Source: Pavona decussata
Taxonomy: Eukaryota
Direction: 5' to 3'
DNA length: 64,000 nt
Assembly (NCBI GenBank): GCA_977016875.1
Contig: CDRNST010000274.1
Span: 1,364,001 to 1,428,000 of the forward strand
Shown here: positions 46,123-46,194 of the stretch, piece after piece
Numbering within the stretch: the first letter of the stretch is position 1
Layout: the number at the start of each line of letters is the position of its first letter
Translations under genes and position numbers: made by a program
Notes under the pieces: model-generated
Databases searched by the model: none
Seen by the model: the letters and a program-made list of their open reading frames with translations, nothing else
What the model was told of the DNA's origin: nothing

Positions 46123-46194
46123 GAAACTGGCTTACAACAACCTCAACGAACTGTCCAAAGGAGTTTTTGCTAACAATATCCAGCTGCAGGGGGT
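46123..46194 (+). CDS. LRR exon 13 (family A, recombinant): KLAYNNLNELSKGVFANNIQLQG(V)
   Basis: gatag|G AAA...GGG GT|gtaagt; 5' half resembles exon 7, 3' end identical to exon 8. Confidence 0.85.

Follow-up and report, generated by a model that had tools for sequence, protein, structure and literature searches.

How did a coral genome come to contain an exon that begins like one LRR exon of an array and ends like the next? This question is raised by positions 46123–46194 (+ strand) of a 64,000-nt stretch of Pavona decussata DNA, referred to below as the window, where the first-pass annotation had noticed a recombinant cassette. The locus studied comprises the window and 110 kb around it (174 kb in total; positions are counted from the first letter of the window) and lies on a 2.08-Mb contig; the assembly searched amounts to 602 Mb. 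The 19 exons bearing a conserved core were numbered in order, those starting at 32450, 34063, 46123 and 55862 being exons 6, 7, 12 and 16, respectively (exons 7, 8, 13 and 17 of the first-pass annotation, whose exon 1 starts at 1386).

Organization of the LRR exon array

A core sequence of 24 nt is present in the window in 19 copies, all on the + strand (up to 3 mismatches allowed; 0 copies expected). Each core occupies the same offset within a 72-nt exon bounded by AG and GTAAGT-type sites. Every such exon has a single open frame, which begins at its second base, and encodes one 24-residue LRR of the pattern xLxxNxLxxLPKGVFxNNxxLxx. Since they are open only from the second base and have AG/GT borders, the exons are predicted to be symmetric, with phase 2 on both sides: the last two bases of an exon and the first base of the next one form a Leu codon. 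Owing to this symmetry, any exon can be gained, lost or fused in frame.

The length is exactly 72 nt for every listed LRR exon of the 174-kb locus that is not split by a MITE. An AG acceptor and a full 72-nt repeat were found in all cassettes, and the splice donor is of the GTAAGT type in all but one (GAGAGT). Judging from these signals, the exons of the array would be spliced into mRNA. The array may be partly decaying, as one exon per short unit (described below) is broken by a MITE.

When compared with the LRR_8 profile, single exons produced weak matches (E 0.007–0.1), below the cut-off, as expected for 23 residues. Their matches in PDB were chains of VLR, LRRTM, Toll, LRRC15 and GPIb-alpha, and the repeats belong to the extracellular LPxGVF class of LRRs. 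Searches with the exons taken singly identified no ROC-COR or other non-LRR domain, and found neither the gene ends nor the domain family. A search for LRRCT as a mark of the gene end gave no match in the genome, the control genomes being equally silent, and Pfam analysis of the larger ORFs returned transposon fragments only.

The repeated module consists of the 72-nt exon, with phase-2 introns on either side, followed by an intron of ~1.6 kb. The modules are 76–87% identical, introns included. The array also holds a module duplicate (6-type), the hybrid exon and a 9.7-kb triplication.

Modules combine into higher-order units, in which the exon types follow one another as 10, (6), 7, 8, 9. Long unit A (28946–37578) contains six exons, starting at 28946, 30532, 32450 (type 6), 34063 (type 7), 35685 (type 8) and 37507 (type 9), and long unit E (72184–78897, beyond the window) contains five, starting at 72184 (type 10), 73724 (type 6), 75356 (type 7), 77001 (type 8) and 78826 (type 9). 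They flank three short units of four exons each (10-type, MITE-split, hybrid and 9-type). The first of these, S1 (37010–46748, + strand; 9,739 bp), comprises the 9-type exon, a 5.4-kb intron with a probable retroelement remnant, and the 10-type, MITE-split and hybrid exons. S2 (46749–56487, + strand) is 99.9% identical to S1, and S3 (+ strand) extends from 56488 to 64000, continuing to 66226 beyond the window. S3 is followed by a fourth block composed of a 9-type exon, the spacer and a 10-type exon, and then by unit E.

Self-alignment revealed a 9,739-bp period at 99.9% identity and a 13,674-bp offset at about 99%. The periodic region, from 37010 to ~72410, is made up of four blocks, each with a 9-type exon, the 5.4-kb spacer and a 10-type exon, and of three unit interiors placed between them, and its identity of 99.9% corresponds to about 11 substitutions in 9.7 kb. 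Another higher-order repeat, of ~31.9 kb, was observed between −33848 and 10184, where units Y and Z have nearly identical exon sets; an identical exon (NLTDNELKKLPKGVFANNTKLGR) occurs in both, at −30507 and 1386.

Transposable elements and DNA adjacent to the array

The LRR exon at 44205–44622 (+ strand) is split by a 343-bp MITE (44260–44602) with 45-nt inverted ends (87% complementarity) and a 3-bp target duplication (AAT). Excision of the element in silico restores a 72-nt exon; read-through leads to an in-frame stop after RRRRQRKRQ. The same insertion was found at 30532, 53944 and 63679, the four local copies being 100% identical. Members of this MITE family are dispersed over many contigs at 84–90% identity (2,639 first-look candidates).

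The 5.4-kb spacer intron carries antisense ORFs (39592–41861, − strand) that are repeated at 49331–51600 and 59066–61335. One of them (41349–41861) resembles retroviral-type aspartyl proteases with a very high score in protein-language features only, and has no Pfam match. Going by this resemblance, the spacer ORFs are probably a retroelement remnant.

A further 17 kb of transposon debris lies within the array, at 11000–28000 of the window. This segment encodes RVT_1 domains (14527–15327 and 23604–24476), a hAT dimerisation domain (19682–21049) and a retroviral protease. It also includes a GC-rich part (52%) with + strand ORFs (26372–27990) that matched no family.

On the right side, homology to the array ends abruptly at 84798. 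Approximately 270 bp further, two tandem ORFs (85068–86501) with HNH_3 and NUMOD1/NUMOD4 domains (E 8.5e-14 and 6.6e-16) were identified; their predicted products are homing-endonuclease-like, which is unusual for an animal contig. From 84798, about 27 kb of unrelated DNA follow before the next listed LRR exon (111961).

Structure and breakpoint of the hybrid exon

The exon at 46123–46194 (KLAYNNLNELSKGVFANNIQLQG; unit S1) has an intact AG acceptor and GTAAGT donor. Comparison with its neighbours showed that it is a fusion of two adjacent exon types, represented in unit A by exon 6 (ELAYNKLNELSK...TKLQW; 32450–32521, + strand) and exon 7 (NLTDNELK...IQLQG; 34063–34134, + strand). Positions 1–32 of the hybrid match exon 6 except at 46124, 46127 and 46141, and positions 33–72 are identical to exon 7, so that a LAYN 5′ half (6-type) is joined in frame to an IQLQG 3′ half (7-type).

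The flanking DNA follows the same division. The 555 nt upstream of the hybrid are 99.5% identical to the sequence upstream of 32450, and the downstream sequence, 570 nt counted from the core, belongs to the 34063 type but is only 90.0% identical to it. The composition read from the sequence by the first-pass annotation is therefore correct as regards the upstream side, the 5′ half, the 3′ end and the type of the downstream intron, but this intron is not nearly identical to the one following exon 7. Exon 7 starts 1613 bp downstream of exon 6 (34063 − 32450), and this stretch is missing from the hybrid unit, as had been noticed earlier.

The position of the switch was determined in a recombination-breakpoint test on the aligned modules. 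Among 316 informative sites (500 nt per side), a run of 100 sites of the first (P) state, with one exception, is followed by 204 of the second (Q) state, with 11 exceptions (maximum chi-square 266, Fisher p 2e-68). Since the final 6-type site is 46154 and the first 7-type site 46179, the switch took place inside the 24-nt core common to both parental exon types (46155–46178, + strand), which is where it had originally been placed.

The hybrid exon is present in three near-identical copies with private differences: the one described above, a second, identical in sequence, in unit S2 (55862–55933, + strand), and a third beyond the window (65597–65668).

Phylogenetic trees were constructed for 32 modules of the 174-kb locus, representing about 14 independent lineages, using (i) 450 nt of upstream sequence plus exon positions 1–32 and (ii) exon positions 57–72 plus 450 nt of downstream sequence. 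In the upstream tree the three hybrids group with 32450 (support 100/99) and with the second 6-type exon, 73724 (100/99). In the downstream tree they are sister to 34063 and 75356 (100/99), the 6-type modules being placed in another major clade. AU tests rejected both the grouping of the hybrids with 7-type modules for the upstream data (p = 6.0e-6) and their grouping with 6-type modules for the downstream data (p = 3.6e-6). Upstream and downstream topologies thus conflict, but for the hybrid exon only: no other discordant lineage was detected among the 32 modules of the 174 kb. A smaller set of modules led to the same result.

Units with 99.9% identity are a kind of repeat that assemblers handle badly, and S2 has no private substitution at all, so a false join at the core, or over-expanded 9.7-kb units or stacked haplotypes, had to be considered. 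Such an artefact is very unlikely. The junction is present three times with private variants, the copy at 65597 differing from the other two at 2 exon sites. Moreover, the joined 3′ flank differs by 9–10% from all other 7-type flanks and is confined to this junction in the assembly, so it was not borrowed from 34063 or 75356, and the locus sits in a 2.08-Mb contig. An error in the number of units is possible, yet it would leave the hybrid itself in place. Neither the hybrid junction nor the family core was found when metagenome contigs were scanned for the exact patterns.

Mosaic origin of the hybrid unit

The two sides of the breakpoint differ in age. The left side belongs to a young tract (43201–46154, + strand) that spans the MITE-split exon as well as the 5′ half of the hybrid and is 99.5% identical to 29527–32481 of unit A (13 substitutions and 1 indel, i.e. 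0.5%). The first-pass annotation had mentioned ~2.9 kb of nearly identical upstream intron; the identity was borne out, but the tract is not all intron, as it contains the MITE-split LRR exon at 44205.

The right side (46179–46748, + strand) is composed of the 3′ end of the hybrid and 554 nt of 7-type intron of an older paralogue lineage. It is 90.0% identical to the 34063 flank and 91.3% identical to the 75356 flank, and no closer relative or donor was found in the 602-Mb assembly. The three lineages of 7-type flanks, polarised with the Z-unit copy, are roughly clock-like, with the hybrid branch splitting just before the A/E split. The intron following the hybrid contains a poly-G tract (46407–46440), the length of which varies among the three tandem units and is much greater than in the parental-type introns.

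Given flank divergences of 0.5% and 9–10%, the hybrid joins a young, unit A-like tract to an older 7-type paralogue. A clean, one-step deletion of 1613 bp in a fresh copy of unit A was considered and rejected, as the flanks differ 20-fold in divergence. This gap means that at least two events took place, or else one conversion between diverged units. The first private difference of the hybrid from the 7-type consensus is at 46244. Because there is none before this position, young DNA may extend past the core by up to 65 nt before the older DNA begins; the change of exon type cannot be displaced in this way.

Exchange tracts are visible elsewhere in the array. The divergence between units A and E declines from about 10% near 31000 to 0.5% from about 35300, the step being intronic (near 35250), and neighbouring units in general are 0.1% to 10% diverged. 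The array is a patchwork of exchange tracts of differing ages, and evolves concertedly.

Direction of change

The first-pass annotation held that the sequence could not tell which arrangement is ancestral. Comparison of the units does so, and shows the hybrid to be derived. The long units that flank the short ones, A and E, keep exons 6, 7, 8 and 9 in order as separate exons. Furthermore, the intron that follows exon 6 belongs with those following 10-type exons and not with the one following the hybrid, so that exons 6 and 7 are not a simple duplication of a hybrid-like module. In the outer units Y (−33848), Z (−1906) and G (117463) there is a single intron between the 10-type exon and a plain 7-type exon, which identifies exon 6 as a later module duplicate. 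The LAYN 5′ half of the 6-type was found only at the studied locus in an assembly-wide search, and the hybrid joins this derived 5′ state to the IQLQG 3′ state of exon 7.

The opposite order of events, in which the hybrid would be ancestral and the separate exons 6 and 7 of units A and E would have arisen by tandem duplication and divergence, is extremely unlikely. It is compatible with the outer units Y, Z and G, in which the 10-type and 8-type exons have just one exon between them, so that a one-exon state is old in the array. This single exon is, however, a plain 7-type and not a LAYN.../...IQLQG exon, and the hybrid combines a derived 5′ state (type 6) with a derived 3′ state (type 7). An ancestral hybrid is also at odds with the class of the intron following exon 6, and with the 99.5% identity of its upstream 3 kb to unit A, exons 6 and 7 of A and E being 4–7% different.

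Proposed mechanism

These data are best explained, in our opinion with high probability, by homologous recombination in which a 6-type module was misaligned with the 7-type module next to it in the mosaic array, followed by amplification of the resulting unit. Unequal crossing over or ectopic gene conversion in the germline would have involved modules one out of register, and resolution of the exchange inside the 24 nt common to both exons would have produced an in-frame hybrid and one repeat fewer. The left partner would have been near-identical to unit A, and the right partner an older 7-type paralogue. The order may also have been different, with an older 6/7 fusion whose left side was later overwritten by unit A up to the end of homology.

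Two further junctions, both non-homologous or microhomology-based, would have shrunk the unit to 9,739 bp. At the left junction of the unit interior (43200/43201; region 43166–43235, + strand), 353 bp of the usual intron are gone and microhomology does not exceed 1 nt; the same junction is present in a partial unit at 84764. The right junction (46748/46749; region 46740–46757, + strand) has imperfect microhomology of about 9 nt (GTATATTTG/GTGTATTTTG) and joins the 7-type intron to the intron preceding the 9-type exon (equivalent to 37010), with loss of the 8-type exon. Finally, recombination between the flanking 6.2-kb blocks (9-type exon, spacer, 10-type exon) would have led to three copies; alternating near-identical blocks are the pattern expected from such an event.

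We infer the crossover or conversion pathway, as well as the germline timing, from these structures. Sequence divergence of 0.1–0.5% among the copies argues for a germline age. Programmed or somatic recombination of the lamprey VLR kind, with the array as a donor library and the core guiding copy choice, has next to no likelihood. It could draw on the shared LRR class (a single exon matches VLR, LRRTM, Toll and GPIb in PDB), on the position of the hybrid junction within 24 nt of identity, and on the short homology between donor and recipient LRRs that guides VLR assembly (PMC3308329). On the other hand, each cassette is bounded by canonical AG/GT sites and accompanied by homologous introns of its own, both introns were passed on to the hybrid, and the three tandem copies, 0.1% apart and 0.5% from unit A, require evolutionary time. 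Partial cassettes without splice sites flanking an incomplete gene, the defining feature of the VLR type, are absent, and no incomplete acceptor gene was seen in the 174 kb.

Recombination between misaligned modules, as proposed above, is an ordinary mechanism, and no special shuffling system is indicated.

The core region as a proposed site of exchange

The first-pass annotation suggested that the invariant core acts as a homology handle for the shuffling of half-cassettes. As a general rule this proposal was not supported, a single event being recorded among about 14 lineages in 174 kb. The 6-type and 7-type modules are homologous over about 735 nt (76% identity). Their longest identical run (31 nt) is intronic; the core (24 nt) comes second, ahead of runs of 21, 21 and 20 nt. 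With these run lengths, perhaps one in five of the exchanges that depend on perfect identity would fall within the core, and such a location is unremarkable.

Exons 1386 and 34063, which have the same NLTDNELK 5′ half and different 3′ ends, had been regarded as a second possible crossover. Both flanks of these exons are nevertheless of the same type, and the different 3′ ends reflect rapid evolution of the last 16 nt. For same-type exon pairs from different units (−34 kb to 128 kb), divergence is 6.5% in exon positions 1–32, 3.7% in the core, 24% (up to 8 of 16 positions) in the last 16 nt and 14–20% in the flanking introns. The last 16 nt encode variable residues beside conserved leucines, and their excess divergence, as calculated from the aligned exons, suggests diversifying selection or micro-conversion.

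A different break was observed at 3006–3053: the 8-type LRR exon there ends prematurely within the core, after ...GGAGTTTTTGA, and ~3.8 kb of unrelated DNA intervene before the array continues at about 6858.

Recurrent germline re-assortment of 5′ and 3′ halves, with the core as the preferred recombination site and shuffling as a mode of diversification, is improbable. The one clear case does switch within the core, where the 8-type exon at 3006–3053 is also broken; the last 16 nt diverge faster than introns, and exon 3′ ends genome-wide look like mosaics of few states, in a pattern list of over 150 family exons, without flanks, that cannot separate recombination from fast point evolution. However, all modules other than the single discordant lineage are congruent on both flanks, and the core is not the longest identical run between 6-type and 7-type modules. 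The other tract ends and junctions (43200/43201, 46748/46749 and near 35250) are intronic, the flanks of exons 1386 and 34063 are of the same type, and the truncated exon at 3006 abuts unrelated DNA, which denotes a break and not an exchange.

Three differences between exons 32450 and 46123 in the 5′ part had been reported, and all three were confirmed, but they arose on two lineages. The change at 46124 is private to 32450, since 46123, 65597 and 73724 all have A at this position. The variants at 46127 (synonymous) and 46141 (Lys to Asn, after a conserved Asn) are found only in copies 46123 and 55862, the copy at 65597 being ancestral at both sites. Located 14 nt apart, these two sites account for two of the three substitutions by which the copies of the 3.5-kb unit interior differ. 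Variants specific to one or other unit are, besides these two sites, 44908 and the poly-G tract at about 46410. No donor for this variant was found in the assembly, in which it occurs only in copies 46123 and 55862. The pair may represent a mutation cluster, the effect of selection, or back-conversion of the third copy.

Both sites would lie in the ligand-facing 5′ half of the hybrid. They can be combined, together with the hypervariable 16 nt, in a broader proposal that the LPKGVF-coding core is a recurrent, possibly somatic, exchange point giving rise to new binding surfaces in a VLR-like manner; we consider this very improbable indeed. If true, exchange at the core would give corals a VLR-like way to new binding surfaces.

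Comparison with other LRR systems

For plant resistance genes, it is textbook knowledge that LRR repeats undergo unequal crossing over and gene conversion, and the same processes have been put forward for LRR exon arrays of algae and ciliates. Brown-alga ROCO genes with one LRR per 72-bp phase-2 exon were reportedly described by Zambounis in 2012, and copy choice in the assembly of lamprey and hagfish VLRs is said to have been proposed by Nagawa in 2007.

In the brown-alga ROCO (LRR-ROC-COR) genes each LRR is encoded by one 72-bp phase-2 exon, and exons have been duplicated in tandem together with introns (Teng 2024, PMC11378527). Their variable residues face the ligand, exon duplication and shuffling were inferred from genomic sequence, and alternative splicing is documented (PMC11378527). 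The coral exons are likewise of 72 nt, with phase 2 on both sides and one LRR each, and form tandem exon-plus-intron units. They differ in that they occur in an animal genome, belong to the extracellular LPxGVF class of LRRs, and are separated by introns of ~1.6 kb which are themselves repeated.

A study on Tetrahymena describes LRR arrays of uniform 90-bp exons with an extreme phase-2 bias, repeat units of exons and introns, and transposable elements, and proposes unequal crossing over between exons of one gene as the source of more or fewer repeats (PMC6564038). The coral array resembles them in its uniform exon length, phase 2, intragenic repeat units and transposable elements. In contrast to the coral array, the Tetrahymena exons are of 90 bp and out of register with the repeat, the introns are of about 250 bp, and the organism is a ciliate with a split between germline and soma genomes. 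The available text describes no individual hybrid exon with a mapped breakpoint (PMC6564038).

In plant Hcr2/Cf-2 and Cf-9/9DC genes, in-frame recombination between repeats alters the number of LRRs (PMC7468133). These genes share with the coral array 24-residue extracellular LRRs, coding DNA that is highly repetitive at the nucleotide level, and in-frame non-allelic exchange that yields a chimeric repeat and a changed repeat number. The plant LRR regions are, however, intron-less, so that all exchanges fall within the coding sequence, whereas in the coral array the homology is mostly intronic, and a hybrid repeat is formed only if the exchange is resolved within the 72-nt exon.

In VLR assembly, short stretches of homology shared by donor and recipient LRR sequences act as the guide (PMC3308329). 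The class of LRR is the same at the coral locus, where one junction, a single fixed event, lies in a short stretch of identity inside LRR-coding sequence. VLR assembly, in contrast, is a somatic process that operates on an incomplete germline gene, and its cassettes are not spliced exons; those of the coral array are ordinary exons flanked by introns, and the hybrid is a fixed feature of the genome, present in triplicate.

Unequal crossing over between LRR exons is the accepted mechanism in comparable arrays (PMC6564038, PMC11378527, PMC7468133). The coral array appears, from its sequence, to have the features of tandem one-LRR-per-exon arrays that evolve in this way. The hybrid exon is a new instance of a known process and not a new mechanism. 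Because the last 16 nt of its exons evolve faster than the introns, the family is a candidate for fast-evolving recognition genes. The hybrid provides a breakpoint-resolved case, in an animal, of an LRR domain changing its number of repeats and making new repeat combinations, and one contig is enough to read which partners recombined, in which direction the change went and how the unit was later amplified.
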